DNA from: Rhodosorus marinus CCMP1338
Lineage: Eukaryota; Plantae; Rhodophyta
Length of the DNA stretch: 64,000 nucleotides
Direction of reading: 5' to 3'
Assembly: GCA_029953675.1 (NCBI GenBank)
Contig: JAMWBK010000001.1
Span: 1,426,001 to 1,490,000, forward strand
A program made the position numbers and the translations under genes. This document shows positions 5,401 through 43,949 of this stretch, in pieces (the stretch's first letter is position 1; each line of letters starts with the position of its first letter). The notes below the pieces were generated by a model. It was not told where the DNA came from. It searched no databases and saw only the letters and a program-made list of their open reading frames with translations.

Positions 5401-5685
5401 AAGGATGTGGCAGGGGACCCCCAAAACTTTGACGTGGTGATAGTTGATGTGGAGCTGACGTGGTTTATAGTCATGACCGTGAGAGTGTGGACTTCTTTTG
5501 GTTTTTGCGTGTTGTGTGCATGAAAAAGTCTCATGAAGGTTTCATGCAGGTCTTTCGCAGGTTCCTGTATCCACGGTTCCCTTCCCCAACCTCCTACCTC
5601 CTCCACACCGGACGTCATTCGTTTGGACGATGTGGTTTCACCAGGCAAGCATTGGCTGGCTGGCTTTACTGGGCTGGACTTGACT

Positions 5686-8185
5686 GGACTTTACTAGCAT
5701 AGCCTGAAGCGCTACGCAAGGCGTGAAGATGAACTAGTAACTAGGGAGGGAAGCATGCAACCCCAGGCGCCGATGGCGCGCCTCGGAAAGCATGTGGCTG
5801 GAATATCGCCAAAGGGAGACACTTAAACGCCTCAAGAGCGCCAAATATTCAGTAGGATGCTCAGCAAAACATTTCCGCATCCACTCTAAACCCGACTTAT
5901 CCACGTGACCAAAGCTTTCCACAATTGAATGGCTGGAACCGGTGAGAGCGACCCTCAGCGCAAGGCAGACTGGCCATGCTCTCAGCATACCGTCGTTCCT
6001 TAACTCTTCGAAGGGCTGAAGCCGCGGCCCCCCGGCGGCGGGCGGCTGCGGTGAGGTGGACGCTGGCCACGGGGCAGGTAATCGCAAGGTCCAAATATGT
6101 TGAGCGTCTGGCAGCAGCGTCGGAGACGAGGAGATCGGCTATACAACGGGGCGGTGCAGAGTCCGAGATTGATCTGGGCAGTTCCGACTCAACCTCAACC
6201 GTATGCCCTATCCGAGTCAAAATTCGCTGAGGATGTACTTGAGGCGAGTGTGACGCCTCGTACGGAGACCTCTCAACAGTCCGCAGGAACCCAGGAAGTG
6301 GTAGCCACAAGCGTCAATCCGGCTCTCACATCCCTGACAGAAAGACGGCCGATTAGAGTGCCACGGAGCCTGTGGCAAACCGAGAGAGATCCGTGCGGCA
6401 GAACGGAACTTGAAAGCATCGAGACGATGACTCAATGACGACGGTAGAGTGGTTAACCACAAGTGCGAGAGGTGGCCTCCCATGCCGCGGAGACGAGCGG
6501 CAGTGGTAGGCGGCGTGAGAGGAGAATTGAGCATGACTGTGTGAGCGGCACTGTGTTGGCCCCAGGTGAGGCTATGTTGAATCACATCAGTGCGGGAGCT
6601 CCACAATCGGCTCAAACCCGGGTAGTCTGCAACAAGTGACCCGGGGCTAGCCTCTCCGTCATCGGAAAGAACTCGGTCGAGGGGAGAATCCTCAATCGCT
6701 TCAGCTCGTCCCCATAACAGCTCCCTCCAGGAACGAAAGCGGGACCTATTTGCGCCCGGCACGGCGTTGCACCTCCTGAACGCGTGTTGAAGACCATCAT
6801 AAATTGTCAAAAGCGGGGGCGGCAGGGTCACTGGATCCTCGTTGGTCAAAGCTCGAGCCAAGAGGCAGGCACTTCGCATCTGGAAGGTCACCAACGTTCG
6901 CAGCGCGGTAGCCCAGGAGGCAACTACCTGCTGGCGAGCATACCAGCCCACGGTCTGCGACGCCGAATCCCCCTAATCGCAACGGTAGAGCGATCTGTGC
7001 ACGAATCAAGTCCCTGTCGGGAGCAGCTTCAAGATCGAGGGGCTCATCCAAGAGCGTTCCCCAGTGTTGCAGGGTCATCTCGTCGGCTTTAGCCGCGATC
7101 CACGAGCCCCAAGCTGGAGGCAGGCTGCGCAACCAGTAGTTGAGTCTGGGACCGGCACAAAAGCGGGAAAGCAAGCAGGCCGATTGCAGCATGCTGTCGG
7201 GTAGGTGCTCAATGGCGTCGGTGAGTTGCTTGTGCTGTGCCAAAACTCGCTCGCAGGATGCTTGGACAAAGTTTTCAGTGCCCAATCCGACGCCGTGGTG
7301 TTCAAACCCTTCACGTTCGCTGATTAGTCGCAGAGTGGGTGGCAGAGAGGCCAGCGACACGTCCCTCGGGGGGAGAAAGCGACATTTTTCTGTTTCCACA
7401 GTCAAACCGACGCGACGTGCAATCGCTTCGATCTCGGTCAGGCCCCCTAGCCAGGGTGTCAGGGGTGCCCAGCAATGTTACGGCATCGTGGTACGCGCAG
7501 ATTCGAAGATCCGAGACGTCAGTCGAAAGACGTAAAAGTACGAGCTGTAGGGCACAGGCATGAAGAAGAGGTCCGCAAGGGTCGCCTTGTTGGACGCCAG
7601 TATGTGCTTGAAAAACAGTGCCCTCCGTTGTCAAGTAGGGGAGGCTCTCCCCTCCGTAAATACCCGACAGAAACGGCCACGCCTCCCTAAACACCCGTCG
7701 GAGCTCCTCTAGCGCATGCGTCCGCGACACGCTGTTGAATGCGTTCCGGAAATCAACCACCAAGACTCCCCACTCCGGCCTACTGGCGCGTTCTAGCTCG
7801 ATCCCATGGGTAATCAGTTCGCAACCCCCAGAAAATCCCACCCCTACTTGCAAGGGCGCCATAAAAGCTGTGACTCGCTGGCGAAGGCGCTGGCATAGCC
7901 ACCTCCCGGCTAACTTCCGTAGGCTCTCCACCATCCCGATCGGCCGGAGATGCGGGTGGGCCGGCTGGTGGTCAGGTTTCGTGAGCAAGCAAAGCTCTGC
8001 CGCCGGAGATGTTCCCATGGCGCAGACGCACCCGATACGCCCTGGAACAACTTGTTAAGGATCCTCAGAAGCGCGCTCTGGCCTGGCTGGCTCAGGGCCT
8101 GCAATAGATCTGTTCTTAGTCCGGAGGGTCCGGGACAGCGTCCCCGACGCGAGGTACGAAGCAAATCCTCCAGGTCAGACTCACC
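5686..8185 (-). mobile_element. Family A copy A1, 5'-truncated, frameshifted
   Basis: RT (QQGDPCGP, AYHD), zinc knuckle CQGC..HFLGSC and RLE pieces in ORFs 7910-8200, 7311-8018, 6797-7405, 6217-6951, 5897-6310; A tail at left end. Confidence 0.95.
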
Positions 8186-8900
8186 GGACTTGACTAGCAT
8201 AGCCTGAAACGCTACGCAAACCGTGAAAAGGAACTAAGAACTAGGTAGAGAAGCGTGCAAACCCAGGCGCCGATGGCGCGCCTCGGCAAGCATGCTGCTC
8301 TAATATCGCCACAGAGAGACACTTAAACGCCACAAAAGTTCCAAGTATTCAACAGGATGCTCGGTGAAACATTTCCGCAACCACTCTAAACCCGACTTCT
8401 CCACGTGACCAGAGCTTTCCACAATGAAAGGCTGGAACCGGTGGGAGCGACCCTCAGCGCGAGGCAGACGGCCATACTCTCAGCATACCGTCGTTCTTTC
8501 ACTCGGCGAAGGGCCGAAGCAGCTGCTCCCCGGCGGCGAACGGCGGCCGTGAGATGGGCGCTTGCCATAGGGCATGTAATCGCGAGGTCAACATAAACTG
8601 AGCGTCTGGCGGCAGCATCGGAGACAAGGAGATCTGCGATACAGCGCGGCGGTGCCCTATCCGAGAACGATCTGGGTAGTTCCGATTCCACCTCAACCGT
8701 ATGCCCTACCCGAGTCAAACATTCGCTGAGGATGTACTTGAAGCGAGCGTGATGCCTCGTACTAAGACCTCTCAACAGTCCGCATGAACCTAAGAAATGG
8801 TAACCACAAGCATCGATCCGACTCTCACATCCCTGACAGAAAGACGGCCGATTAGAGTGCCACGGGGCTTGTGGCAAACCAGGTAAATCCGTGCGCGGAG
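8186..8900 (-). mobile_element. A-subfamily 3' fragment (zinc knuckle + RLE)
   Basis: ORF 8386-8877 is homologous to the A C-terminus; variant tail gctagtcaagtcc. Confidence 0.9.
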
Positions 8901-10462
8901 CGAAACGCTCCGAGCTGGTCCTAGCCAGAGGACCAGCTCGGAAAAGCGAAGTGGAGGTTTGTAGAAGCGAATGACCTTTGTGCCGGAGATATGGGGGATA
9001 TTACCACCTTCGTTCAATGCCGCTCTCCTGATCTTCTGCTCTTGCACTCGCGGTCACCGGCTGTCAATGAAATCCTCCCGACAAACGCTGATGGCCATTT
9101 TCTGAGTTCTAGCTTCTACATTTAGACGTATTCTCCATATATATATCTGAAAAACTGATACTGTTTATTTACGGACGAGTTTTTCCTATATTTTGACCAC
9201 ACGAAAGGTTGAGGCTTGCCCAGATAACCGCCGCTGCTGACCGCCCTAAGTGAATGGATCGTCACATTTCTTCGCACCTGGCGCTGTTGGTGATTGTCCG
9301 TCTGGCAAGGCCCCTTCTTTGAAAACGCCGAGTGCTGATTCTACGAAACGTATGCCATGAGCGCGTCAGGTGGCGACTCGCAGAGTATCGACACGGCGAA
9401 GCCTTTACGTGCCGCCGAACGACATGAATTGGATTAGTTTGGACTTGTTGACGTAAATTGGCGTGGGCAAGCCACTAGCAACACATAAGCCCCTTCAGAA
9501 AAGAAGAATAAACAGCAGAGTCTCGCGGCTGGTTTTGAAATTCAAAAGAGACCGCGGCTGAGAAATGACCCTGGCAAATGGAAAACCCTTTTGAAGTCAG
9601 ATGTGCAGCCCTTTGGTGTTGTTCCACACGAACCATTCTGGCGTTAGGAGTTTGGCCTGTGTCAGGATTCATCTAGGATTGCCAGTGTTTGATGATCGTG
9701 ACACGAAACTTGCTGAAAAAAAAACACGAGACGAGCCCTCATCATACGGCATCAACTCTCTTTCCATCGAGGTATTGCAAAGTGCAAAGATCGGCTGATG
9801 TTGTCGAACCCTCCCCCGGGCAACAGCAGCGAAGCACATTCGACGATAAAATTCGATGCTCGTGGTTGAGGGCGGTTCTTGCCTTTTCGTCTACCGTAGT
9901 CGTAGAATCGCCAGCAACAATCTTGTTGATCCCCGAGCAGATGGCTAGAACTGATGAATGCTGAAGTTGGGTTTTGGGTGGCTCTCTTTCCAACTGACGA
10001 AAACAAGGACCGTAGCGATTGTATCCCTCAGCCATTTCAACCAGCGCGTTTGCGTGTCTTTTTTTTCGTTCTCACCATCTGCCTTCGGTGGTTTGACGAG
10101 CGCAACTATGAGCAAATCTCTTACATTCTTGTTTCCCAAGAGAAACGGCCACCTGCCTTCTGGTAAGATGTGGAGCTAGAACATAGTTGTTGATGAAGTT
10201 GATATCGAGGGTAGCCAACTTGACTCTGGTTGATTGGTGGAGTTAGCTGTTGGCGGTAGTAGTTTTACTAGTTCGCCCTCGTCGTGGGTACCGTCGTTCT
10301 CGCTCCATCCCTCATGCTTTCGAAGCAGTTGAGCAAAGCGATAAAAGGAGTCAAGCGGGAGTTTACGATATCTTCAACCGTGCGAATGATCGGCAATGTG
10401 AAAAGGAGGTGTAGGAAAATATACATGGTCCAGACGGAAGCTGACGAGGAAATTGAGAGGCA

Positions 10463-10978: not shown

Positions 10979-11099
10979 CAGTAGTTTTGGTATGGCTTTC
11001 TAGAGCTCAGTTTATTGGGAAATGGTCAAGTTGTGGGGCTCTTCGCTCACTGAGTAAGCTCATTGTGTCTAGATAAATCGATCCACGGCCAACGTTAAA

Positions 11100-11620: not shown

Positions 11621-11789
11621 AAGTAGCATTGGAACGCCAGAGTATAAAGGACTATTCTGTGAGGGGGTTACTCGTGTTGTGCCTGGTGTTCACAATCTCG
11701 CCCTATGGCAATACATTATGTTTCCGCCAGTTGGTTCAGACAACTCCTCTGCCCTCCAGCTTCCTGCGCAAGAGAGATTCAACGACGAT

Positions 11790-12075
11790 GCTTAAATTCC
11801 GAACAATCAGCAGGAGCGATGAGTACATCCTACGCAGGAGACTGGAGGAGAGCCGTGGCGGAGGAGCTTAGCTCGTTAAGATCAACCAATACGTGGAGCC
11901 TCATCAACAGTTCAGAAGTATCGATGGGGAAGAAAATTTTGCAGTCAAGCACCGTGCTGCAAGGGAAGCGAGCTCTAGACGGCTTTGTTCAACGCTTCAA
12001 AGTGAGAATAGTTGCGAAGGGCTTCACGCAACGAGGAGGTATCGGTTACGAGGAAATTTTCTCCCCATGGTCGAT
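11790..12075 (+). mobile_element. Ty1/copia reverse transcriptase N-terminal fragment
   Basis: WRRAVAEELSSLRSTNTWSL...RFKVRIVAKGFTQRGGIGYEEIFSP is the conserved copia RT motif; no LTRs seen. Confidence 0.85.
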
Positions 12076-12272
12076 TCCTGTGGCTGCTGCATGTATAGCT
12101 CCTTTTTCAGAACTCCATTTAGACAAGCAGTCTTAACATTAACCTGCTCGATATTTCCGGATCATCCCTAGGGCTAGCGTGGTAAAAGGGCCATAGGGGC
12201 ACGTTAGTCCTAGGGATGATCCGGCAAGTCCTATGTAGGTTTCGATGAATGGTTTCGATGAATGGTTTCGAT

Positions 12273-12341
12273 GGGCTTTACTAGCATAGCCTGAAGCGCT
12301 ACGCAAGGCGTGAAGATGAACTAACAACTAGGGAGGGAAGC
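12273..12341 (-). mobile_element. ~70-bp family A 3'-end insertion
   Basis: A 3' UTR and tail; 11-bp TSD atggtttcgat at 12262-12272 and 12342-12352. Confidence 0.9.
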
Positions 12342-12473
12342 ATGGTTTCGATAGGGCGGGCGATAATAAAAATCATTCGAGGAGTAAAAAAAATCATTCG
12401 AGGAGTACCCCTCGATGCTGAAGCATTTCGACAGGGGCCATAGCGCCAAGTTTAGTGGTTTTTAATTGCCCTA

Positions 12474-15400
12474 TCTCCGTGAACAACAAGAGGTATATTG
12501 TAGCTGGCGCAAGGCAGGCTGCTGAGTATGCGAGTCCACTTGTCCGCTCAGAACATAGTATGCTGTATCGGAGCTGAGGTAAAAGCTTTTAGTACAAAAT
12601 CCCGCCGAGCATACCCTGGTAGACACCAGAAGCTGTTCGTATTATCAGAGGGCATCCTCCGGGGGTGTTGATACTGTACTGGGTGACTCCTTCCCCGCTA
12701 GAGAATAGGCGATTGTTGAAGAGAATAAGCCCAACCGTTCCTCCCAAGTCCGATTCGCACTTCCTCTCAAACTGCGCGTCAGCGATGTCGTAGGCAGTTA
12801 CGCTGTCGCATCCAACATATAAAATCTTTAGATCTTCGGAAAGTACTAAACTTTGCACACAGGGAGAATTGACCTCGGCAACCACCTCAAGCGTCTCCGG
12901 GTTCCACCGTCGTATGGTCTTAGTCAAGAGGCTTGGGGGGAACGGGTTAACTGTGTAGAGATCGGATTGTCCCCTGATCTCAAAATGAGTAATGTAAATC
13001 GTTCTGGCTTCGTTCACCTTCGTGTAGTTCTGGGAAACGTCGTACTGCATGACAATTCCTTCTCTCTCGAGCTCAGGAATACTGTACCCCACGTATAAAT
13101 ACTTGGCCGTGAGCGCAGCATCCACGGGCTCTAGTTGGAAGTTTCCGTACATCTCAGGTTTGATTTCAACCTCGGTCTGGAGGGTTATTGGCTCCATGAT
13201 CCTGACGGATTTGCCCGCTGGAGAGATCAAAAGCATTTTCTCTATGAGATCATCACTCGAACCTCGGATGAAGATCGGTCCTTGTGACGTGAGGAGATTA
13301 TCTCTCGTCTCAAGTAATTTCCCGTCCTCATCGATATGCCATCGACGAACGAAGCCGGCATCATCTGTTTTCTCCCACGTATACATGTATGAGCGGTACC
13401 GCATTACGGTCTTGTATCCTTCGCCACCTTCTTGAGGTTTAAGCATCTGCATCGCCCTGCTACCATTTCTGAGGCTGTGTGCAGCGTACAGCTCAATATT
13501 TCCCAGCTCATCAACAACCGCGACGTTGGTCTTACAATGAGCCAGTGATCCTATCAAGCTGATGAGCACGAAAGCAAACACTACTTTCATCTTCCAGCGC
13601 GCTTTTCTGTCTTCTCAGAAAGAGGTGTAAAAACCAACCACGTCTGTTTTCGATCGGCGAAACCTAGCTGAAATTTCAGCAGCAGACTACTAGGAGCAAT
13701 GCTAGGAATAGCTTGTTATCAGCTTCACACAGAAGAAACAGCGTGAACTTTCTTTTAAGCGTCTGCTTGGTTTGGCAGCCTCTCCAACAGATTCCTCTTA
13801 TTCCCTCAACAAGTCGTTGCACTAATTCTGTTCCAGTTGTTCCAGTTGCACCTTCCCCCTCTCGTGCCAAATGATGTTTCACAATCCCCACACTAAATTT
13901 ATATACACTCTAGCAGTACCCCAGGTCCAAGCTCGCAAACGTCGACATGGAGGTCTTTACCACTTTAGTTGGTTTTGTCTCTTTACGGCGTCTAGCCCGC
14001 CAAATCTCCAGATGGTTGGAACCAATCAAAAGAGCTTTTTGGCGCATGCTAAAATTAGAACTTGACTTTAGATTTCGAACGGAAAGAGAATCTCGGCATA
14101 TGATCGCCCAGTCTAGTTGTGCACATCTGAGGGGTCCAAAATTTTCTCCTCGAAGAGTAGAATATAATAGTGTTGTCATGTACCGTCCGATAAGGTTTAT
14201 CGGACAGTACGGATATTTTTTGAAGTGGAAAGACTATTGAAACACAGCATAAGACGAATGGGTGTCCAAATAAACTTATTCCAAAAACAGGTCCGATTGC
14301 CCGTCCGATAAACAGGACCGATAAATCGTCCGAAGTTCAATCAACGTTAGTCTAATAATCAATCATCTCCAGTCCAGGTATTGAATCATGATTACTTCTT
14401 GGAATGGCTCGTGTATCATGAATCATCATTACTTCTCCTAATGACCAGCTGACACTATCATGTAATGAATCATGATTATTTCTGGACTCGACAGGCTGGC
14501 AAACGTTGGTTGAAGATTGCGGTTAAGGTGGCAAGGACTTGGAGTAGAACAAGCGAGTTCCGAAGGGAGTTGTCTCGTGTCCTCTGGTAGCGTGAGTACT
14601 TTGGGGATCGACCATATGGTTGGTCGCGTTTCAGTGTCTTTTTGGGTTAACCCAGTGGTGGAGTTCAACCGCCGTTATTCTCGAGGCGAGTTCTTTGTGC
14701 CGTTCGTATTCCTTAGCCCCCGGGGGACTTAATTCTCGGAGCAAGCCGAGTGGACTTTTTCTTCGAGCCACATAGCCAGGAGCTTCAATAGTTTGGTAAC
14801 CATGAGTTCTGCCCGCATCGCAGACATTGGCATTTTGTCGCCCGCTCTCGTCTATGAAATCGCTGAAACCCTCCCAGACCACACTCTTCCTCTTCCCCTT
14901 CCCTATTCTTCACTACTAGGAATTTCAACTACAGTTCCCGAACGAAGACTTTCCTTGCTGCCCTAGTGCTCGTAGAACCATCCTAGTGGACCTCGGAAAA
15001 TATTGGGACCCTTACGTCCTCGGAATTTGCTAGCCTTTGTAAGTGGATTATCAACGGTAAGTCCTTGGAATCTCGTAACTCTTGTATGTGGATTGGTACC
15101 GTTGGAAATGCAGACAGCAAATGATCACATTGTTTATTCATCAACGGAAAAACCACCTGAGAGCAGGAAACCTAGCAAAACCGACCTGTACGATCCCACC
15201 AAAAAAGGTAGTAAGTCCTCGTATATTGATGAAAATCAAACGTTAGTCAAAACACAAACTCTGAAAAAGAAGAAATCCGAGCTAAGGGTAGGCGGGAGGG
15301 GCGGATCTCCATAAAGAGGAGCAGCAATGCAGCCCCAAATAACAAACCCTGAGCTCCTCCAACAATTTCAGTAGCCCCGCTGGCACAGGATGATTTCCTT

Positions 15401-15587
15401 CATCCACACAGCAATGGAACTAATCGATATCCTAAATATCCGAGGAGCAAAGGAGAGGCCATCAGCCCAGGTGGAGTCGGCAGGCAGTGAAACCCTTGGA
15501 TACTCCGCAGGACTTAATCCCTCGGTTCAAGTTCCTTGGCACTTGCTCATATGCTCTCACACCCTATCACCAGATAGTTGGCCACCG
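12474..15587. repeat. Segmental duplication copy 2
   Basis: See copy 1. Confidence 0.95.
12589..13590 (-). CDS. Secreted protein, 333 aa, paralog of 251-1252
   Basis: Same length; 15 amino-acid differences from copy 1. Confidence 0.85.
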   Translation of the reverse strand: MKVVFAFVLISLIGSLAHCKTNVAVVDELGNIELYAAHSLRNGSRAMQMLKPQEGGEGYKTVMRYRSYMYTWEKTDDAGFVRRWHIDEDGKLLETRDNLLTSQGPIFIRGSSDDLIEKMLLISPAGKSVRIMEPITLQTEVEIKPEMYGNFQLEPVDAALTAKYLYVGYSIPELEREGIVMQYDVSQNYTKVNEARTIYITHFEIRGQSDLYTVNPFPPSLLTKTIRRWNPETLEVVAEVNSPCVQSLVLSEDLKILYVGCDSVTAYDIADAQFERKCESDLGGTVGLILFNNRLFSSGEGVTQYSINTPGGCPLIIRTASGVYQGMLGGILY

Positions 15588-15597
15588 TAAATATAAT

Positions 15598-15632
15598 ATA
15601 AACGGTTATCGGACCGTCCGATAACCGTTTAT
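15598..15632. repeat. Perfect palindrome, 16-bp arms, 3-nt loop
   Basis: ataaacggttatcgga-ccg-tccgataaccgtttat. Confidence 0.95.
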
Positions 15633-17189
15633 TGGAGTTGTCTCTAGTAATAAGAGGTACTTTCTGTATAATTTTATCGGACTGGAATATAATAGGGCTT
15701 CCTCCGATAAATTTTCCGATAACGATCAATTGCGTCCGATATTTTTCAATGATTTTCTCTTCTTTTTCGGTGCATGGTCGTTTGCCGACTCGACTAAGGT
15801 TTGATTTTCTTCAATACGCGAGGTTGTGATTACACCTTCCATGATATCCCGAAGGTGGGTATGGCTCGATCAACAAATGCTTTGACAGCCTGTCGAAATC
15901 AGAAGTAATCTGTCCGGGAGGTTCTCACTTAATCATAATCATGATTCATTGCATGATAATGGAAGCTTGTCATGGCGAGGACAGCTTAGGCGTAAACATG
16001 ATTCACGATAAGCGAGCATTGACCCAAGAAGTTGTCAATGTTTCAATAACAGGACTTGGAGATGATTGACTATTAGACTGATGTTGATTGAATATCGGAC
16101 GACTTATCGGACCTGTTTATCGGACGGGTATTCGGACCTGTTTTTTCGAAGAATATCAATCGGACACACGCTGCTTTTATACTTGTTTTCAATAGTCTAT
16201 CCCCCGCTCCAAAAAAATTATTGGTAATATATAATCGTGCCGTCCGATAACGTTTGTCGGACGACACGATGATCGGACGGCACATGCCAACGCTACTTAT
16301 AGCCTTGCCTTGAGGATGGGTACAAAATCTACAGACGTCAGGCAGAGACAATGTTCACTATCTTCACTGCTGACAACGGGATCGGCAACGCTCACCCTAA
16401 AAAATCAATATTTTGTAGCTAATCAATGCCACGTCAGATCATGTGGGAGTTAGTCATTGGATTTTTTCGCTAATCCAGAGTGGGTCCAACTCAATGGGTG
16501 GCTTTATTCCGCGATGTATAATCGATTCCTACAGATTGAATGAGTACAAATTGGTTTCATTGAATATAAATTTGATGAATGGGAGACTGAATTGTGTGTT
16601 CAATGGAAGTATTTATTACCCGACGTAGCGGTTTCGTCATCTTTCATTCATCATTGGTAACCATTGCTATAATTAAATATAAAAACATCCCAATATTTAA
16701 GATACTACTTCATACAATTTATTCTTTTTTCAGTTTGGTATGAACTACCATTTTTAAATATGTGTATTTGCCAACCATTCCATTGACCACCCACCCAGTT
16801 CAACCCGTCCGTCCTACAAGACTGATGCTTTGTTACCCCAGTGCCAGTCGATCTCGTCCAAGAAACAAAAGCTTGGGTAACGCTTTTTTATGGGGACGGC
16901 TGGCAAACCGGCAATTCCACCCCTTGGTTTGGTGAAAGCTTTATATTCCACGGGGCAGTGCTGTCAGGGGCTGTTGAGGAACCAAGTCACAGTCTGTCTC
17001 TAAATGAAGAACCTTCTAGAAGTCAAACTGATTAGATTTAGGATATGCTTTGGTATTGCTCAGCCGGAGAAACGGGTCGCTAAATACCGTTTTAGAGCAG
17101 CATCTATGTACAGTTTACGGAATGGACTGGTCAAGCTGCGCATCGACCACAAGGTCCGACGCCTAGTGGCCATGTGGACTACGTACCCA

Positions 17190-17790: not shown

Positions 17791-17929
17791 TTGCCAGCTT
17801 AGTACATATCTCATCATGGCGCCTTTGCCACAGCCCAGACCAGGTACACAGTGGTGAAATATTTGTACTTTTTTAGTACGGTGCGTACTATGACAGGTAG
17901 TACACAGCTCCGTCGTCCGTAATCCTAGA

Positions 17930-26279: not shown

Positions 26280-26327
26280 GTACTTTACTAGCATAGCCTG
26301 AAGCGCTACGCAAGGCGTGAAGATGAA

Positions 26328-29300
26328 CCAATAACTAGGGAGGGAAGCATGCAACCCCAGGCGCCGATGGCGCACCTCGGAAAGCATGTCGCTGGAATAT
26401 CGCCAAAGGGAGACACTTAAACGCCTCAAGAGCGCCAAATATTCAGTAGGATGCTCAGAAAAACATTTCCGCAACCACTCTAAACCCGACTTATCCACGT
26501 GACCAAAGCTTTCCACAATGAATGGCTGGAACCGGTGAGAGCGACCCTCAGCGCAAGGCAGACTGGCCATGCTCTCAGCATACCGTCGTTCCTTAACTCT
26601 TCGAAGGGCTGAAGCCGCGGCCCCCCGGCGGCGGGCGGCTGCGATGAGGTGGGCGCTGGCCACGGGGCAGGTAATCGCAAGGTCCACATATGTTGAGCGT
26701 CTGGCAGCAGCGTCGGAGACGAGGAGATCGGCTATACAACGGGGCGGTGCAGAGTCCGAGATGGATCTGGGCAGTTCCGACTCAACCTCAACCGTATGCC
26801 CTATCCGAGTCAAAAACTCGCTGAGGATGTACTTGAGGCGAGTGTGACGCCTCGTACGGAGACCTCGCAACAGTCCGCAGGAACCCAGGAAGTGGTAGCC
26901 ACAAGCGTCAATCCGGCTCTCACATCCCTGACAGAAAGACGGCCGATTAGAGTGCCACGGAGCCTGTGGCAAACCGAGATAGATCCGTGCGGCAGAACGG
27001 AACTGGAAAGCATCGAGACGATGACTCAATGACGACGGTAGAGTGGTTAACCGCAAGTGCGAGAGGTGGCCTCCCATGCCGCGGAGACGAGCGGCAGTGG
27101 TAGGCGGCGTGAGAGGAGAATTGAGCATGACTGTGTGAGCGGCACTGTGTTGGCCCCAGGTGAGGCTATGTTGAATCACATCAGTGCGGGAGCTCCACAA
27201 TCGGCTCAAACCCGGGTAGTCTGCAACAGGGGACCCGGGGCTAGCCTCTCCGTCATCGGCAAGAACTCGGTCGAGGGGACAATCCTCAATCGCTTCAGCT
27301 CGTCCCCATAACAGCTCCCTCCACGAACGAAAGCGGGACCGATTTGCGTCCGGCACGGCGTTGCACCTCCTGAACGCGTGTTGAAGACCATCATAAATTG
27401 TCAAAAGCGGGGGCGGCAGGGTCACTGGATCCTCGTTGGTCAAAGCTCGAGCCAAGAGGCAGGCACTTCGCATCTGGAAGGTCACCAACGTTCGCAGCGC
27501 GGTAGCCCAGGAGGCAACCGCCGCTGGCGAGCATACCAGCCCACGGTCTGCGACGCCGAATCCCCCCCATCGCAACGGTAGAGCGATCTGTGCACGAATA
27601 AAGTCTCTGTCGGGAGCAGCTTCAAGATCGAGGGGCTCATCCAAGAGCGTTCCCAAGTGTTGCAGGGTCATTTCGTCGGCTCTAGCCGCGATCCACGAGC
27701 CCCAAGCTGGAGGCAGGCTGCGCAACCAGTAGTTGAGTCTGGGACCGGCACAAAAGCGGGAAAGCAAGCAGGCCGATTGCAGCATGCTGTCGGGTAGGTG
27801 CTCAATGGCGTCGGTGAGTTGCTTGTGCCGTGCCAAAACTCGCTCGCAGGATGCTTGGACAAAGTTGTCAGTCCCCAATCCGACGCCGTGGTGTTCGAAC
27901 CCTTCACGTTCGCTGATTAGTCGCAGAGTGGGTGGCAGAGAGGTCAGCGACACGTCCCTCGGGGGGAGAAAGCGACATTTTTCTGTTTCCACAGTCAAAC
28001 CGACGCGACGTGCAATCGCTTCGATCGCGGTCAGTCCCCTAGCCAGGTGTCAGGGGTGCCCAGCAATGTTACGTCATCGTGGTACGCGCAGATTCGAAGA
28101 TCCGAGACCTCAGTCGAAAGACGTAAAAGTACGAGCTGTAGGGCACAGGCATGAAGAAGAGGTCCGCAAGGGTCGCCTGGTTGGACGCCAGTATGTGCTT
28201 GAAAAACAGTGCCCTCCGTTGTCAAGTAGGGGAGGCTCTCCCCTCCGTAAATACCCGATAGAAACGGCCACGCCTCCGGAAACACCCGTCGGAGCACCTC
28301 TAGCGCATGCGTCCGCGACAAGCTGTTGAATGCGTTCCGGAAATCAACCACCAAGACTCCCCACTCCGGCCTACTGGCGCGTTCTAGCTCGATCCCAGAG
28401 GTGATCAGTTCGCAACCCCCAGAAAATCCCACCCCTACTTCCAAGGGCGCCATAAAAGCTGTGACGCGCTGGCGAAGGCGCTGGCATAGCCACCTCCCGG
28501 CTAACTTCCGTAGGCTCTCCACCATCCCGATCGGCCGGAGACGCGGGTGGGCCGGCTGGTGGTCAGGTTTCGTGAGCAAGCAAAGCTGTGCCTGCCGGAG
28601 ATGTTCCCATGGCGCAGACGCACCCGATACGCCCTGAAACAACTTGTTAAGGATCCTCAGAAGCGCGCTCTTGCCAGGCTGGCTCAGGGCCTGCAATAGC
28701 TCTGTTCTTAGTCCGGAGGGTCCGGGACAGCGTCCCCGACGCGAGGTACGAAGCAAATCCTCCAGGTCAGACTCACTGAGCGTCAGATCGATGCGAAACC
28801 TGGCCAACTCCGGACGGTCCAAGAATACCTCGAATTCAGGGACAAATCCACGTCGGACTCAGGGAACAAAGACCACACCGTCTGGGCGAGACTATCATCG
28901 TAGGGGAGGACAGGCGCCTGGCTCCTCCAAAACCCGCGCCGCTCGACTTAAATCGCCCACTGCTACCAATTTCTGTACTCGAGCCGGCACGGGCGACACT
29001 GTGCCATGCCGAGTCCGGACGGGCGGATGGTGCTGACGACGCCAAATAGCTGCGCTGTAGTACTTCGAAGTCTCCCTTCAAGAACAGGGCCAGTCGGTCT
29101 CGTACTCGCCATCTGCGCTCCGATGTGTGAATGGGGGCCAGAATCAGGCGCGGCATGACCCCAGAAAAACCCAAATGACTGTGTCCCGAATGTTGCGAGC
29201 CAGGCTCGTGAAGATGAAATCGAGAATGGTTCCAGCTACTAGAAGGTCTCCACGAGGAAGGACGACTGGGGAATGCCCCCACGGAGGGGAAGCGAGCCTC

Positions 29301-29397
29301 CTTCCAAAGAAATCCACCGCCGGAGCCAACTCCGAAAACGCGTACGCCAAATGCCCCAGTCTCCGCCCTCCTTCAGGACATAAGACTGTAGATCCAT
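26328..29397 (-). pseudogene. A2 ORF2 (RT-zinc knuckle-RLE), frameshifted, stop codon TAG changed to TGG
   Basis: Pieces in ORFs 28836-29282, 28031-28822, 26148-27998, compared with A3 and A7. Confidence 0.85.
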
Positions 29398-29429
29398 AGG
29401 CTGCGACCTCGCAGCCGTGCCTGGAAACG

Positions 29430-30838
29430 CTAATCGTGCTTCTCCCCCTTAGACCCGGGGAGTCGGTCCTCGCTCTCTTACCTCCTATCCGCACCAAAGT
29501 CGTGAGCCGCCCACTCCGCGAGGCTCGCGGAACGGATCCCGCGGGCTTCAGCAAAGTAACCTGGGCGTCCTCCACCGCCATGCCCTCAGTCTGCTCCCCT
29601 TCCTCACCACTCTCGCTGGAAGTAGTGCTGGAAGCAGAGCCCTCCAAAATCCCCACCCGCTGCAGCTCTGTCTTGTAGCGCGAAGTCAGCACAAGTCGCC
29701 TCTCCAGATCGAAGAAACTGGAAACCGCCATGCGCAGGTGACGAAGGCCCGACCGGAACCGCTCCAACAAGATCCTCTCAAGGCGCTGAATCCGTAGCCA
29801 ATGGATCGCTGCCGCCTTCACGCTGCTCTCATGCTCAGAGAGCCCTGCCGTTTCTCCCGGAGACAGGAAATTGCCCGAGAAACGGTCAAAATCGAAGTGC
29901 AAAACCACCTGCGGGTTGCAGCGCAGCCACCGGGCGGTCTCAGGCCACTGCTCGGTAGGCTTCGCCAGCAAGGCCTCCAGGTACTTGGCGGCGGTTTCGG
30001 AGACCAAAAACAGCACATCGCGGCCCTCATAGTTTGCGAAGAAGAAATCACCCCGGCTGCACCCTAACGATTCCGCAAAAGTGTCCCGGAAGTCTCGCAT
30101 AGACGGAACCTGTCCTCGTGTAGTCTGGGGCCGGACATTTCGCACCCACAGAAATTGGAGAGTGGTCTCCACAGGTCCATCCTGAGGCTCGCGAGATGGT
30201 ATGAAACGGAGCATAGCCGCCGTACGTGTGGCAGTGGTGCCCTTCCGCAAGACTGATGCGTACGAAGCGCCCCCCTTGCGGCCACCACGTGCCCCCGAAG
30301 TAGCCGGAGCTGGTGACCACCTGAGGGCTGGTCCAAGAGAGGGAAGTCCACAGCTGCAGTCTCCTCCACACCGGTTGCCGCACAGTCACCACCACCATTG
30401 CCTCGAATCCCCGAGCGCTGAAGCGCGTTTTGGCCCGGCCTGCCGCTCCCCAACGTCGTACTGTCCTGGCGCAGAAGCAACAGCCCTCGCCTGTCCCGGG
30501 ACAGGTTCATGTTGATTGACCTGATGTTGACTGCCTTCAGCCAACGCTGCCACTCTGGGGCAATTCAAATTCTCCTCCGAATTTGAATTTGACCTGGCCA
30601 GCAATCCCGATTCCAGCCCACCTAGCTTCTGGGTGAGCTGAGGGAGCACTCCACGATCACTCGCAGCCGTGATCAGGCTGGTGACAGCGGAGATAAGTGC
30701 ACGCGCCTGGGTGCCAGAAGCGCCTTCCAAGTCAACCTCGGAAGAAAACGTGCCGCAGCTGAGGCGAACACGGAGTCCCCCACCTGGCAGTGCCTCCTTG
30801 GGAGGAGGCTCCGTCGGGCGCGGAGATATCCCTACCAT
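29430..30838 (-). pseudogene. A2 ORF1
   Basis: MVGISP start; SYASVLR..NVRPQ..DFRDTF motifs; in-frame TGA at 30386-30388; end inferred from A7. Confidence 0.75.
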
Positions 30839-31116
30839 CCTGAGGGAATGCGCAAAGGAAACGTTGCACCACGAACATGAAACCGCACCGAGAGAATAAT
30901 CGACCAAACCCAACCCAAATAGGAAAGGCCCCGCAACACACCCACCCGGAAGACAGAAGTAGTTGCAAATGCAAACGACGCCCCGCGGAAAATCGAGGGG
31001 AAGGCGTACCAGAGGAAGCGCTTCCCGTAAACGAACACGCTCGCGACCGAAAAAGAAACAAAACCCCAATCCTCGACAACAACCACCCCAGACTAGGACT
31101 TTACTCCCCCTGTACT

Positions 31117-32166: not shown

Positions 32167-32222
32167 TCTTTTTGTCCCCTCGGGGTTTTTTTTTTTCAGC
32201 CTCCGATTAAACCATTCGTTCG

Positions 32223-32520
32223 AATATCTTCGTAAAGGGCGGTGTACTTCGAGAACTTCTGCATGAAGTCCTGTAGAAAATTCTCTTCTGAAAGCGTTGA
32301 CGCAGTATCCATTGTATCCGCTGGATTATCACCACTGGTAACCTCATGTACATACTGCTCAGAGTTCTCTTCGATTTCCCCCTCCTCAAGCTGAGCAGCG
32401 GGGCAGCAATTGTCTCCTCCAGGGGGCACTCTCATCGCTCAAGGTTCCCTCCCCACCCCGGGAGGGGGGGGGGGTTCTCCAACGTTCGTCATCACTCTCA
32501 AATAATCATTTCTTATACCA
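32223..32520 (-). mobile_element. C2 5' end and ORF1 N-terminus
   Basis: ORF 32196-32435 ends ..ALYEDI across the TSD and continues at 22634 (EDIGVAVAD); linkage inferred from the TSD. Confidence 0.7.
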
Positions 32521-32546
32521 CTACCAGATTCCAGACTAACTTCCCA

Positions 32547-32620
32547 CCCCAGACTACCCCAGACTACCCCAGACTACCCCAGACCAACGTAACCGTCAGA
32601 CTAACGTACCCCAGACTAAC
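32547..32620 (-). repeat. (TAGTCTGGGG)n repeat at the 3' end of C3
   Basis: ccccagacta x3 at 32547-32576, variant at 32577, another unit at 32609-32618. Confidence 0.95.
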
Positions 32621-33369
32621 GTAACTTCAGATTAAAGTAACTGTAAGCTTTACTGGGGAGCTGCCTACTGCAGCGTAACACTACTTCTATCGCTATCTAG
32701 GGGAGTATTTACCGGAATCCCGCTACCGGGGTCTCATGCTACTTTCAAAAGAAAAAAGAGGGACCAGTGGATTGTCCAACTGGTCCACGCGCTAAGCGCC
32801 TAGGGCGGTCTCTGCATTACCTCGCCGTAGTTGCCTGTTGATCTGCGATCTTACATCGCTCAGCTCCTCGCTCCCGTGCAATAGGTGTTTGCAGCTGACC
32901 AGCAGAAACTCCTGTGCCATATGTTTCTACCGCAATTGGGATGAACTTGTCATCCGGGTGTTCTATCGTCATCGCCTGCTTGTAGTGCGCTTTCTTCCAG
33001 CTCTCTGCACATCTTGCTGAATATCCATTCTGCGCCTCACTTCGCAACAGATACTTCCCTTGCAGAGGAGACGCAACCGTCACGTCCAGTGCATATCGTT
33101 GAAATGTCCTCGGATGCGTAGCAATGAAGTCTGGCCGTAGCCCGTAGTACTTCTCTGGTTCCTGCTCGATGTCCAGAAAGTTCCACCTGTTCAGCCTGCT
33201 TGCGATCTCCGTGCATATCTCGTCATGCCTACGTTGCCACAGACCAGTCGACGTGGGGCAATGATGAAAGCGTTGTACTCCGTTTGCACCGTGTTTACCA
33301 CGGCATCGAGTACGCTTTTCCGTAGTCCGCAGCCCCGGAATCGGTTGCCCCAGTAGTTGTCGGATATAA
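32621..33369 (-). mobile_element. 5'-truncated C-type copy C3
   Basis: ORF 32817-33374 HHC..RRHDEI..RPDFI..LDVTV; 3' UTR hairpins as in 19780-19969. Confidence 0.9.
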
Positions 33370-33744
33370 CCCAAGACTAACGTAACCCCGTAGCCTTTAT
33401 TGGGCAGCTAGCTAATGCAGCGCATCACACGATCACTACGTACGCACTAATCAAACCTGGACTCCCTGTCCAGGAGTCTCATCTAAATTCTACTTAGGGG
33501 AAATATCGGTCTATCTGCGCGATCTTTCTCGATCGCGTGCTCAACTAGCGCAGCATTGTGCTGCCACAAAATGCGGTTTAATTGACCCCTCACCGACGAT
33601 AGATGGGAGTCACGATCATGCAGGTGCGTGCTCGCCGTTCGAAGAAATTCAAGGCTTGCCTCGCCCATTCGACCAAAACTCTCAAAAATGAACGGCACAA
33701 CAACCACATCTCGGTTTTCCCCCCTCAGCACTTCCTTATAATGC
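33370..33744 (-). mobile_element. Family D 3' part (RLE C-terminus + 3' UTR)
   Basis: LHYKEV..FESFGRMG..QLNRILW; tail cccaataaagg..ttacgttagtcttggg. Confidence 0.85.
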
Positions 33745-33758
33745 AACTGGACTTTACT

Positions 33759-36700
33759 GGACTTTACTAGCATAGCCTGAAGCGCTACGCAAGGCGTGAA
33801 GATGAACTAATAACTAGGGAGGGAAGCATGCAACCCCAGGCGCCGATGGCGCGCCTCGGAAAGCATGTCGCTGGAATATCGCCAAAGGGAGACACTTAAA
33901 CGCCTCAAGAGCGCCAAATATTCAGTAGGATGCTCAGCAAAACATTTCCGCAACCACTCTAAACCCGACTTATCGACGTGACCAAAGCTTTCCACAATGA
34001 ATGGCTGGAACCGGTGAGAGCGACCCTCAGCGCAAGGCAGACTGGCCATGCTCTCAGCATACCGTCGTTCCTTAACTCTTCGAAGGGCTGAAGCCGCGGC
34101 CCCCCGGCGGCGGGCGGCTGCGGTGAGGTGGGCGCTGGCCACGGGGCAGGTAATCGCAAGGTCCACATATGTTGAGCGTCTGGCAGCAGCGTCGGAGACG
34201 AGGAGATCGGCTATACAACGGGGCGGTGCAGAGTCCGAGATGGATCTGGGCAGTTCCGACTCAACCTCAACCGTATGCCCTATCCGAGTCAAAAATTCGC
34301 TGAGGATGTACTTGAGGCGAGTGTGACGCCTCGTACGGAGACCTCTCAACAGTCCGCAGGAACCCAGGAAGTGGTAGCCACAAGCGTCAATCCGGCTCTC
34401 ACATCCCTGACAGAAAGACGGCCGATTAGAGTGCCACGGAGCCTGTGGCAAACCGAGATAGATGCGTGCGGCAGAACGGAACTGGAAAGCATCGAGACGA
34501 TGACTCAATGACGACGGTAGAGTGGTTAACCACAAGTGTGAGAGGTGGCCTCCCATGCCGCGGAGACGAGCGGCAGTGGTAGGCGGCGTGAGAGGAGAAT
34601 TGAGCATGACTGTGTGAGCGGCACTGTGTTGGCCCCAGGTGAGGCTATGTTGAATCACATCAGTGCGGGAGCTCCACAATCGGCTCAAACCCGGGTAGTC
34701 TGCAACAGGGGACCCGGGGCTAGCCTCTCCGTCATCGGCAAGAACTCGGTCGAGGGGACAATCCTCAATCGCTTCAGCTCGTCCCCATAACAGCTCCCTC
34801 CAGGAACGAAAGCGGGACCGATTTGCGTCCGGCACGGCGTTGCACCTCCTGAACGCGTGTTGAAGACCATCATAAATTGTCAAAAGCGGGGGCGGCAGGG
34901 TCACTGGATCCTCGTTGGTCAAAGCTCGAGCCAAGAGGCAGGCACTTCGCATCCGGAAGGTCACCAACGTTCGCAGCGCGGTAGCCCAGGAGGCAACCGC
35001 CGCTGGCGAGCATACCAGCCCACGGTCTGCGACGCCGAATCCCCCTAATCGCAACGGTAGAGCGATCTGTGCACGAATAAAGTCCCTGTCGGGAGCAGCT
35101 TCAAGATCGAGGGGCTCATCCAAGAGCGTTCCCCAGTGTTGCAGGGTCATTTCGTCGGCTTTAGCCGCGATCCACGAGCCCCAAGCTGGAGGCAGGCTGC
35201 GCAACCAGTAGTTGAGTCTGGGACCGGCACAAAAGCGGGAAAGCAAGCAGGCCGATTGCAGCATGCTGTCGGGTAGGTGCTCAATGGCGTCGGTGAGTTG
35301 CTTGTGCCGTGCCAAAACTCGCTCGCAGGATGCTTGGACAAAGTTGTCAGTCCCCAATCCGACGCCGTGGTGTTCGAACCCTTCACGTTCGCTGATTAGT
35401 CGCAGAGTGGGTGGCAGAGAGTTCAGCGACACGTCCCTCGGGGGGAGAAAGCGACATTTTTCTGTTTCCACAGTCAAACCGACGCGACGTGCAATCGCTT
35501 CGATCGCGGTCAGTCCCCTAGCCAGGGTGTCAGGGGTGCCCAGCAATGTTACGTCATCGTGGTACGCGCAGATTCGAAGATCCGAGACCTCAGTCGAAAG
35601 ACGTAAAAGTACGAGCTGTAGGGCACAGGCATGAAGAAGAGGTCCGCAAGGGTCGCCTTGTTGGACGCCAGTATGTGCTTGAAAAACAGTGCCCTCCGTT
35701 GTCAAGTAGGGGAGGCTCTCCCCTCCGTAAATACCCGATAGAAACGGCCACGCCTCCGGAAACACACGTCGGAGCACCTCTAGCGCATGCGTCCGCGACA
35801 CGCTGTTGAATGCGTTCCGGAAATCAACCACCAAGACTCCCCACTCCGGCCTACTGGCGCGTTCTAGCTCGATCCCATGGGTGATCAGTTCGCAACCCCC
35901 AGAAAATCCCACCCCTACTTGCAAGGGCGCCATAAAAGCTGTGACGCGCTGGCGAAGGCGCTGGCATAGCCACCTCCCGGCTAACTTCCGTAGGCTCTCC
36001 ACCATCCCGATCGGCCGGAGACGCGGGTGGGCCGGCTGGTGGTCAGGTTTCGTGAGCAAGCAAAGCTGTGCCTGCCGGAGATGTTCCCATGGCGCGGACG
36101 CACCCGATACGCCCTGGAACAACTTGTTAAGGATCCTCAGAAGCGCGCTCTGGCCAGGCTGGCTCAGGGCCTGCAATAGCTCTGTTCTTAGTCCGGAGGG
36201 TCCAGGACAGCGTCCCCGACGCGAGGTACGAAGCAAATCCTCCAGGTCAGACTCACTGAGCGTCAGATCGATGCGAAACCTGGCCAACTCCGGACGGTCC
36301 AAGAATACCTCGAATTCAGGGGACAAATCCACGTCGGACTCAGGGAACAAAGACGACACCGTCTGGGCGAGACTATCATCGTAGGGGAGGACAGGCGCCT
36401 GGCCCTCCAAAACCCGCGCCGCTCGACTTAAATCGCCCACTGCTACCAATTTCTGTACTCGAGCTGGCACGGGCGACACTGTGCCATGCCGAGTCCGACG
36501 GGCGGATGGTGCTGACGACGCCAAATAGCTGCGCTGTAGTACTTCGAAGTCTCCCTTCAAGAACAGGGCCAGTCGGTCTCGTACTCGCCATCTGCGCTCC
36601 GATGTGTGAATGGGGGCCAGAATCATGCGCGGCATGACCCCCAGAAAAACCCAAATGACTGTGTCCCGAATGTTGCGAGCCAGGCTCGTGAAGATGAAAT

Positions 36701-36761
36701 CGAGAATGGTTCCAGCTACCAGAAGGTCTCCACGAGGAAGGACGACTGGGGGAATGCCCCA
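33759..36761 (-). mobile_element. Family A copy A3, 5'-truncated just inside ORF2
   Basis: Flanked by the 14-bp duplication aactggactttact (33745-33758, 36762-36775). Confidence 0.95.
33807..36635 (-). CDS. A3 ORF2, 942 aa uninterrupted: RT + zinc knuckle + RLE (lacks ~80 N-terminal aa of the full ORF2)
   Basis: VDFRNAFN, QQGDPCGP, AYHDD, CQGC..HFLGSC, RRH, IADLLV..VDLAI, VESFG. Confidence 0.95.
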   Translation of the reverse strand: MPRMILAPIHTSERRWRVRDRLALFLKGDFEVLQRSYLASSAPSARRTRHGTVSPVPARVQKLVAVGDLSRAARVLEGQAPVLPYDDSLAQTVSSLFPESDVDLSPEFEVFLDRPELARFRIDLTLSESDLEDLLRTSRRGRCPGPSGLRTELLQALSQPGQSALLRILNKLFQGVSGASAPWEHLRQAQLCLLTKPDHQPAHPRLRPIGMVESLRKLAGRWLCQRLRQRVTAFMAPLQVGVGFSGGCELITHGIELERASRPEWGVLVVDFRNAFNSVSRTHALEVLRRVFPEAWPFLSGIYGGESLPYLTTEGTVFQAHTGVQQGDPCGPLLHACALQLVLLRLSTEVSDLRICAYHDDVTLLGTPDTLARGLTAIEAIARRVGLTVETEKCRFLPPRDVSLNSLPPTLRLISEREGFEHHGVGLGTDNFVQASCERVLARHKQLTDAIEHLPDSMLQSACLLSRFCAGPRLNYWLRSLPPAWGSWIAAKADEMTLQHWGTLLDEPLDLEAAPDRDFIRAQIALPLRLGGFGVADRGLVCSPAAVASWATALRTLVTFRMRSACLLARALTNEDPVTLPPPLLTIYDGLQHAFRRCNAVPDANRSRFRSWRELLWGRAEAIEDCPLDRVLADDGEASPGSPVADYPGLSRLWSSRTDVIQHSLTWGQHSAAHTVMLNSPLTPPTTAARLRGMGGHLSHLWLTTLPSSLSHRLDAFQFRSAARIYLGLPQAPWHSNRPSFCQGCESRIDACGYHFLGSCGLLRGLRTRRHTRLKYILSEFLTRIGHTVEVESELPRSISDSAPPRCIADLLVSDAAARRSTYVDLAITCPVASAHLTAAARRRGAAASALRRVKERRYAESMASLPCAEGRSHRFQPFIVESFGHVDKSGLEWLRKCFAEHPTEYLALLRRLSVSLWRYSSDMLSEARHRRLGLHASLPSY

Positions 36762-37212
36762 AACTGGACTTTACTAGCATAGCCTGAAGCGCTACGCAAG
36801 GCGTGAAGATGAACTAATAACTAGGGAGGGAAGCATGCAACCCCAGGCGCCGATGGCGCGCCTCGGAAAGCATGTGGCTGGAATATCGCCAAAGGGAGAC
36901 ACTTAAACGCCTCAAGAGCGCCAAATATTCAGTAGGATGCTCAGCAAAACATTTCCGCAACCACTCTAAACCCGACTTATCGACGTGACCAAAGCTTTCC
37001 ACAATGAATGGCTGGAACCGGTGAGAGCGACCCTCAGCGCAAGGCAGACTGGCCATGCTCTCAGCATACCGTCGTTCCTTAACTCTTCGAAGGGCTGAAG
37101 CCGCGGCCCCCCGGCGGCGGGCGGCTGCGGTGAGGTGGGCGCTGGCCACGGGGCAGGTAATCGCAAGGTCCACATATGTTGAGCGTCTGGCAGCAGCGTC
37201 GGAGACGAGGCA
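36762..37212 (-). mobile_element. Family A copy A4, short 5'-truncated
   Basis: Matches the A3 3' end; 5' junction fuses to D in frame. Confidence 0.95.
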
Positions 37213-43881: not shown

Positions 43882-43949
43882 GAAAGTAATATTTTCTGTG
43901 GAGCGAGAGAGTTTCCACGTGCGATGAGGCCAGTTGAAAGTTTTTTAAT

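Follow-up and report, generated by a model that had tools for sequence, protein, structure and literature searches.

How does a retrotransposon come to stand in head-to-tail stacks, with one copy directly behind the 3' end of another? This question is raised by a 64-kb stretch of nuclear DNA (hereafter, the window) of the unicellular red alga Rhodosorus marinus, which is internal to the 3.8-Mb contig JAMWBK010000001.1 (approximately 1.426-1.490 Mb) of assembly GCA_029953675.1. The window is densely filled with retrotransposons without long terminal repeats (non-LTR), and a few intronless host genes lie in between. One of the retrotransposons, family A, is present in more than 20 copies with a common end on one side and varied truncation on the other, as found by self-comparison and by a search with the longest copy. 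An earlier note on this DNA had proposed that family A inserts into the tails of earlier A copies and regenerates its landing site by doing so. The proposal held in our analysis: nested junction strings, an empty site, the age order of the copies and a control family (family B) in the same DNA all speak for it. We consider it very probable that the A stacks were built by sequential, self-targeted insertion. The DNA examined amounts to 116.4 kb of one genome and is repeat-rich. Besides the window, it comprises three stretches reached via host genes: L001 (21.4 kb), L004 (21.3 kb) and a piece of 9.75 kb on the left of the window.

Stacked copies of family A and their junctions

The full-length A element is 4.83 kb long (copy A2) and codes for two open reading frames (ORFs), ORF1 and ORF2. 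More than 30 A copies share the 3' end GGCTATGCT and a tail, and in all A copies the body ends in ...TAGCGCTTCAGGCTATGCT before the tail begins. The tail is composed of 9-10-nt units and has no poly(A). The units are AGTAAAGTCC in the young A copies, which are 97.2-100% alike. In the A' subfamily, whose members are 90.6-94.7% alike among themselves and share 85-89% identity with A, they are AATAAAGCC. The oldest A-type copies have units like CGTAAAAACC. Most new copies carry one tail unit, and some carry three to five including partial units. The 5' ends lie at A positions 1202, 1828, 2331, 3407, 4001, 4383, 4756 and others, and the duplications vary from 3 to 16 bp. With one mismatch allowed, the window holds 14 matches to AGTAAAGTCC, where 2.8 would be expected. 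Of these matches, eleven lie at A 3' ends or flanks or in the 5' leader of A2, three are inside A bodies, and none is independent of A. Conservation was highest in the final 20 nt of the A body (0.96), marginally above the 0.84-0.94 elsewhere in the 3' region.

In the 116.4 kb, a same-strand 5'-truncated A copy starts within 60 nt downstream of 14 of the 37 A-family 3' ends, whereas approximately 0.36 such cases are expected from the density of A 5' ends (binomial tail 4e-19). The list of 3' ends contained one false entry (+61535) and missed one end (43981). Family B is a related long interspersed nuclear element (LINE) with a restriction-like endonuclease (RLE); it shows 42% identity to A in the nuclease domain and possesses an (ATTC)n tail and a T-rich 3' untranslated region (UTR). 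None of the 17 B ends in the same DNA is self-stacked (Fisher P = 0.002 vs A). L004, on contig 12, is a diverged duplicate of window positions 38396-48565, colinear and 87-94% identical. The L004 block lacks three young B insertions (40546-41060, 41973-42246 and 47210-47470) that share 98-99% identity with other B copies, and the B duplications identified from these empty sites, CTGCAGGTA, GCAGTGGTC and (C)AAT, are not tail-like. Furthermore, young A copies (97-100% alike) stand behind older ones (91-95%). Self sites account clearly for six of the 16-17 young A insertions and probably for another two, and eight are elsewhere. The per-site preference for self targets is approximately 3,000-fold.

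Copy A1 (5686-8185, minus strand) is a young 5'-truncated A, 97.4% identical to the full-length A2. It consists of its own tail unit (5686-5695), a body (5696-8184, A positions 2331-4830) and an extra G at 8185. Its host, A1' (8186-8906, minus strand), belongs to the A' subfamily and shares 86% identity with A and 92-95% with other A' copies. A1' has a single tail unit (8186-8195), which lies immediately upstream of the truncated 5' end of A1 and is the first copy of the duplication AGTCAAGTCC (ggacttgact on the forward strand). The second copy (5676-5685, minus strand) stands directly behind A1's own AGTAAAGTCC unit and is followed by the rest of the displaced host tail, AGCCCAGTAAAGCCAGCCAGCC, at 5650-5675. 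As the earlier note had described, this 10-mer flanks A1 and carries the variant base of the neighbouring tail; it occurs only at these two places in the window, and the C variant is found in the tail unit of A1' and in no other tail.

Copy A3 (33759-36761, minus strand) is young and 5'-truncated, and its ORF2 is intact (942 aa, 33807-36635). It is flanked by AGTAAAGTCCAGTT at 33745-33758 and 36762-36775, and the string aactggactttact occurs in the window only at these positions. The host of A3 is A4 (36762-37210, minus strand), a young 449-bp copy with its tail at 36762-36775 and its body at 36776-37210. A4 in turn interrupts the endonuclease ORF of another RLE element, which is C-like; the duplication there does not exceed 2 bp, and the last T of the A3 flank string comes from this C-like ORF, which A4 had hit earlier. 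The A3 flanks given in the earlier note were thus placed correctly, but the two junction bases that it added to the tail are really one or two, and the left limit of the duplication is ambiguous because the tails of host A4 and guest A3 are identical.

The largest stack (50590-54210), which the same note had pointed out, contains six copies. In minus-strand order these are the old A' copies h (53501-54207), g (53204-53491), f (53066-53187) and e (52914-53053) and the young A copies d (52090-52913) and c (50670-52089), and tail remnants follow (50599-50669). The tail segment between g and f is AATAAAGCCAATAAAG (53188-53203), that between f and e is AATAAAGCCAAA (53054-53065), and that between d and c is AGTAAAG (52090-52096). 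Copy c, truncated at A 3407 and ending in its own tail unit (50670-50679), entered the body/tail boundary of d. The other two junctions are of another type: g joins h inside the h body with a deletion, and the 5' end of d joins e approximately 20 nt before the 3' end of e via CGCTT microhomology, which is a target deletion. Each junction string recurs in the window only in the remnant run, AGTAAAG at 50663-50669, AATAAAGCCAAA at 50648-50659 and AATAAAGCCAATAAAG at 50616-50631. The recurrences in the window are nested (8186/5676, 36762/33745, 53054/50648 and 53188/50616), like parentheses. Such nesting would be expected had each copy entered the previous copy and duplicated the start of its tail, and it would not arise from a single template-jumped complementary DNA. 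A 152-bp tandem duplication at 53344-53643, called by Tandem Repeats Finder, was rejected; it is really the overlap of the old copies g and h.

An empty site was found for one of these events. At L004 2602-2692, a 91-bp young A copy stands in an old tail, and the order is ...GGCTATGCT, AATA, tt, the copy, (AGTAAAGTCC)3, AATAAAGCC and ATAAAAACC. The counterpart in the window (45712-45730) reads ...GGCTATGCT AATAAAAACC and contains no insert. The young copy entered exactly where the old tail starts, GCT/AATA (the slash marks the nick here and below), and the tail at 45715-45724 is the empty paralogue of this site. This tail belongs to an old A-type stack (43935-45730, plus strand) with 3' ends at approximately 43981, 44591, 44824 and 45714. 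In another old stack (58013-58970, minus strand), also noticed earlier, an older copy (58294-58970) with a 25-nt tail (58269-58293) is followed by the copy at 58013-58257. Further stacks are present outside the window. In L001 three copies are stacked, and the strings at their junctions, AATAAAGCAG and AGTAAAC(GA), recur downstream; L004 has a young pair at 18726 with only AGT in between. L001 is colinear with the window over one gene only and yielded no empty sites.

Nick site, non-self targets and rival explanations

The nick position was read as the left edge of the duplication (bottom strand, target-primed reverse transcription). The junction segments are 3 nt (L004 18726), 4 nt (L004 2698), 7 nt (d/c), 9-10 nt (L001 1967), 10 nt (A1, with the variant base) and 12 nt (f/e) long. 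These six short segments place the nick at the body/tail boundary GCT/A, and the remaining self events fit this boundary or a later unit boundary. Thus, the first nick is usually at the start of a tail unit, mostly at the boundary GCT/AGTAAAG, and not anywhere in the tail. The new tails meet the duplication in unit register in nearly all cases, at self and non-self sites alike.

The non-self insertions were analyzed in the same way. A2 (26280-31108, minus strand) is a full-length copy inside a family-B element. Its tail is at 26280-26289, and its ORF1 and ORF2, the latter with reverse transcriptase (RT) and RLE, are frameshifted. The earlier note had A2 landing in B at cctgtact, and this was confirmed from both sides: the duplication (sense AGTACAGG) is present at 26272-26279 and 31109-31116 (minus strand), and an uninterrupted family-B paralogue has a single copy at 55519-55526 in the same context, aattCCTGTACTag. 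A young A copy of approximately 70 bp (12273-12344, minus strand; tail AGTAAAGCCC) is inserted in a 13-bp tandem repeat, with the duplication ATCGAAAC at 12265-12272 and 12345-12352. Written as three upstream bases, nick and duplication, the targets are CCT/AGTACAGG for A2, CCT/ATCGAAAC for the 70-bp copy, GCG/TG for A4, GCA/ATCTTAACA for A0 (a full-length copy left of the window), CTC/ATCAACAGTT for an A' copy left of the window, and GCA/AGATCAACGT, TTC/AGTTCACTCGG and GCT/GTTGAATGCGTTC for three tiny copies in L001 and L004. When the positions -3 to +7 of these eight sites were compared with GCT/AGTAAAG, 39 of 80 matched, whereas 2.48 per 10 are expected in the same DNA. The resemblance of the A2 target to the tail unit, suggested earlier, therefore extends to the eight sites (P = 4e-6, or 2e-4 without A2; the sample is small and the motif weak). 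C is found at -2 in six of the eight, A at +1 in six, and G or T at +2 in all eight. Every non-self insertion that could be classified lies within another repeat, and the sample examined shows no interruption of a called gene.

The simplest reading of these results is the following mechanism. The element's nuclease would have a degenerate preference, approximately C-N/A-K-Y-N-N-A, for which the best site is the element's own 3' junction. The first nick would be made chiefly where the conserved 3' end of an existing copy (...GGCTATGCT) meets its tail, and a second nick 3-16 nt downstream would lead to duplication of the start of the old tail and displacement of the remainder downstream. Occasionally, the 5' end would be joined upstream, and the 3' end of the host would be deleted. 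A new copy of even 20-90 bp would bring an identical target site. Since each new copy brings a target site, sites would multiply, and nested head-to-tail stacks of 3' ends would build up. The specificity would reside in the choice of the nick site by the protein and not in pairing between the RNA tail and the primer.

R2-type RTs can jump end to end between templates. Each stack might accordingly be one integration event, in which the RT hops between A RNAs and a single outer duplication is left. The pair at L004 18726 with only AGT between the copies and the junction at L004 6287, which has no tail, would suit such an event, as would the leaders of the full-length copies, pieces of A tail or 3' end described below. 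These lie within the outer duplication; therefore, each full-length copy and its leader arrived in one event. A single event does not predict the nested recurrence of junction strings downstream. Moreover, copies that are approximately 99% alike stand directly behind subfamily members differing by 5-9%, the paralogous locus has the old tail and no young copy, and the variant base in the A1 duplication is in no other tail. We regard template jumping as improbable for the stacks in general, although a few junctions may have arisen by it. The junction strings recur nested and young copies stand behind older ones, and for these reasons we read the insertions as successive.

The site preference itself might come from annealing alone, with an endonuclease of low specificity and an RNA repeat tail that pairs with any complementary 3' end exposed by a nick or break in the DNA; capture might then even be independent of the endonuclease. 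Tail-dependent priming is established for some repeat-tailed LINEs (UnaL2, SART1 and R1), and the unit register of the new A tails would be expected from it. At the GCT/AATAAAG and GCT/AGTCAAG hosts, however, young A copies have a full new AGTAAAGTCC unit before the duplication, so the terminal RNA unit was copied and not paired away. The non-complementary sites GTTGAATGCG and ATCTTAACA also received a whole unit, and what they share with the self site is positions -2, +1 and +2. In addition, the conserved CT upstream of the nick lies outside the primer. Annealing as the only source of specificity is therefore unlikely; pairing of the RNA tail with the primer may assist insertion without being the whole explanation. 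Hardly credible is random insertion followed by survival in repeats as 'safe havens', or later unequal crossing-over or gene conversion between tails. The window is repeat-dense, and the classifiable non-self insertions all lie within other repeats. Selection, however, cannot set 5' ends 0-47 nt from a same-strand 3' end in 14 of 37 cases for A and 0 of 17 for B, and unequal exchange predicts units of equal length, whereas six different truncation points and nested duplications are seen. Because the unique junction strings are nested and the truncation points differ, we rejected misassembly, unequal crossing-over and selection alone.

Several observations weigh against self-targeted insertion or restrict it. 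The claim that A inserts into tails stood, but not for all insertions: only approximately 40-50% of the 16-17 young events are self-targeted, a rough figure because the sample is 116 kb of one repeat-rich genome, and the nick is at the unit start. One insertion (L001 384-1974) used the last unit of a 47-nt tail and not the first. Where the units of host and guest are identical (A3/A4 and f/g), the left end of the duplication is ambiguous, and the placement exactly at the boundary depends on the six short-junction cases. The d/e, g/h and L004 6287 junctions are of the deletion or microhomology type and have no duplication. Upstream of the guest, 3 nt of host tail remain at L004 18726 and 0 nt at L004 6287, which allows template jumping. 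Four of the eight non-self duplications begin with ATC..AAC and are not obviously tail-like, and neither of the two full-length copies seen is fully intact.

The enzyme, the 5' leaders and neighbouring features

By its sequence, family A is a non-LTR retrotransposon with an RT and an R2-type RLE. ORF2 matches Pfam RVT_1 (E = 1.8e-15), and the intact ORF2 of A3 carries this domain. RVT_1 was the only Pfam match in ORF1 and ORF2 of three copies; no apurinic/apyrimidinic (AP) endonuclease, zinc finger or Myb domain was found, although a negative Pfam result is weak evidence. The nuclease has the motif C-X2-C-X9-H-X4-C-X9-RHT-X19-E-X16-AD-X14-D, for which the published REL pattern was the definition applied (PMC12857005). 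When A was aligned with the window families B and C and with four distant relatives from the database, the residues C, H, E, D, D and K proved invariant. The solved proteins nearest to ORF2 by sequence are R2 and LINE-1 ORF2, and the R2 match spans the C-terminal CCHC/nuclease region. An AlphaFold model of the C-terminal domain was obtained with a predicted local distance difference test (pLDDT) score of 82 and a predicted template modelling (pTM) score of 0.80, and each of the seven PDB entries that match it best is an R2 protein (E 5e-8 to 6e-4, template modelling score 0.57-0.71). The R2 clade proper is not matched: the window contains no rRNA, with no Rfam family passing the gathering thresholds over its whole length, and family A inserts at its own 3' junction and in other repeats.

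The database proteins nearest to ORF2 are unnamed and at most 34% identical, and weak matches are present in Porphyra/Pyropia. The R. marinus annotation has no calls for the family-A ORFs. When a metagenome collection was scanned with a 24-mer of the A 3' end, there were 0 matches; a protein-based scan of it for ORF2 gave 183 pattern matches, 0 of them confirmed, and thus no outside copies or transcripts. In a distant relative of ORF2, P0008 (12445-12697 of L006, an animal-like metagenome contig), the ORF runs straight into a (TGTAT)n/(TG)n array. This layout would fit the look of a microsatellite-targeting RLE element.

Both full-length copies begin with G residues and a piece of the A 3' end or tail, after which the shared 5' UTR, GTTGTTGTCGAGG, starts. 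In A2 (leader 31077-31108), the target site duplication is followed by GGG (31106-31108), AGTAAAGTCC (31096-31105), T, AGTCTGGGGTG and GTTGTTGTCGAGG.... In A0 (L008 approximately 16495-16530; record approximately 1,420,460-1,420,500), the order is duplication, CGGG, AGGCTATGCT, AGTAAGGA and GTTGTTGTCGAGG..., and the A-derived piece after CGGG is AGGCTATGCTAGTAAGGA. The leader is present in 2 of 2 full-length copies and in 0 of 6 5'-truncated non-self copies (Fisher P = 0.036). A5 (61043-64000, plus strand), a young copy truncated at A 1202 that runs off the window, is preceded by AGTAAAGCTA and two family-B tails; with AGTAAAGCTA before its 5' end, A5 may have a leader too.

It is possible, and we suggest this only tentatively, that a stack is a working transcription unit, in which the RNA of a full-length A copy begins within the 3' end or tail of its upstream neighbour, or is processed out of a co-transcript with it. 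Alternatively, the RT may jump to the 3' end of a second RNA upon reaching the 5' end of the first. No hepatitis delta virus (HDV)-like or other ribozyme was found by Rfam in the A2 5' region (E <= 10) or in the whole window at gathering thresholds, so processing of a co-transcript is unsupported by known RNA families. If transcription does begin upstream, expression and precise 5' joining would require self-targeting, and every full-length copy would have a target site at both ends. The 'promoting in tandem' arrangement of the Drosophila telomeric elements would then have arisen here independently.

Next to A5, AGTAAAGCTAG stands on both sides (60950-60960 and 61033-61043) of a short family-B copy (60961-61032); upstream of this copy there is a second, tiny B tail, and the truncated 5' end of A5 follows directly. 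Here a tail-like A motif served as the target of a B insertion. The third, C-like RLE family (32546-32641 and 32660-33745, minus strand) ends in (AGTCTGGGGT)n repeats. The start of the A2 5' UTR, TAGTCTGGGGTGG, resembles the AGTCTGGGGT unit, and the C-like 3' region also holds AGTAAAGCT. A 468-aa open frame (36814-38220, minus strand) spans the junction between the C-like endonuclease domain and A4, and was rejected as a gene; it is a chance in-frame fusion of the two elements.

Among the remaining features are two intronless RTX genes for secreted proteins with calcium-binding nonapeptide repeats (38828-40081, minus strand, and 42535-43881, plus strand). They match Pfam HemolysinCabind with E = 4e-23 and 2e-37 and are approximately 52% identical to each other's relatives; the ORF at 42535-43881 is 100% identical to an annotated gene on JAMWBK010000001.1. 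The ORF at 48751-50220 codes for a secreted protein that is 82% identical to one R. marinus protein. A 3.1-kb direct repeat (134-3262 and 12472-15587; 97.3% identical) carries in each copy an annotated 333-aa ORF, in which no Pfam domain was found. The ORF at 11705-12136 (plus strand) has a weak match to RVT_2, the Copia-type RT (E = 3e-5, under the Pfam cut-off), and is probably a remnant of an LTR element.

Comparison with known systems

For Zepp and ZeppL of Chlorella, Coccomyxa and Chlamydomonas, nested insertion into own copies and localised clusters are described, and the arrays are mostly 3' ends because of 5' truncation (PMC8226300, citing Higashiyama 1997; PMC3446292). Family A likewise prefers its own copies and forms tandem 3' ends, with 14 of 37 occupied and with nested duplications. 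Zepp differs in that it is an L1-clade element with an AP-type endonuclease and poly(A) in green algae, whereas A has an RLE and a tail of 9-10-nt units, enters at a defined body/tail boundary, and is hosted by a red alga.

RLE elements are mostly target-specific, and some insert in microsatellites that match their own tail (PMC4640811). Like A, Dong/R4 with (TAA)n, Togen with (TG)n and some HERO elements are RLE LINEs that target a short repeat carried at their own 3' end. Their microsatellite targets pre-exist, whereas AGTAAAGTCC arrays are present in the sampled DNA only as A tails; furthermore, the conserved end of the A body appears to be part of the target site. R1 and R2 form tandems in ribosomal DNA (rDNA) by double insertion at the regenerated duplication, including 5'-truncated copies, and such tandems are also described for other elements (McGurk and Barbash, 10.1101/158386). 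The head-to-tail copies separated by a regenerated duplication are as in the A stacks, but the target of R1 and R2 is the host 28S rDNA. A carries its own target, and its arrays can therefore start anywhere.

HeT-A/TART, MoTeR and GilM/GilT also form head-to-tail arrays with variable 5' truncation. Their arrays occupy the ends of chromosomes, where they form by end addition or by insertion into telomere repeats, whereas the A locus is internal and has duplications. In HeT-A, a copy is driven by a promoter in the 3' end of its upstream neighbour, and such a layout would agree with the tail-derived leaders on both full-length A copies. Co-transcription of R2 with its target is a second analogue for the origin of the A leader.

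Self-nesting is thus already known from a few other retrotransposons, but not from the RLE type or at a body/tail site. A paper that reports this genome names 'transposable elements' a single time (PMC10250338). What is new is the combination of an R2-type enzyme, the element's own body/tail junction as the target, and a red-algal host. An R2-type element can use its own 3' junction as a target, and then does not depend on a multicopy gene or microsatellite of the host. The arrays may benefit the element or its host, and they may spare host genes, as the earlier note had proposed. The compact DNA site, approximately GGCTATGCT/AGTAAAGTCC, offers a handle on target choice by RLEs. At the sequence level, the A stacks show a simple way in which dispersed elements can become growing tandem arrays. 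Such arrays are raw material for satellites or for clusters resembling centromeres, a role that has been proposed for Zepp.

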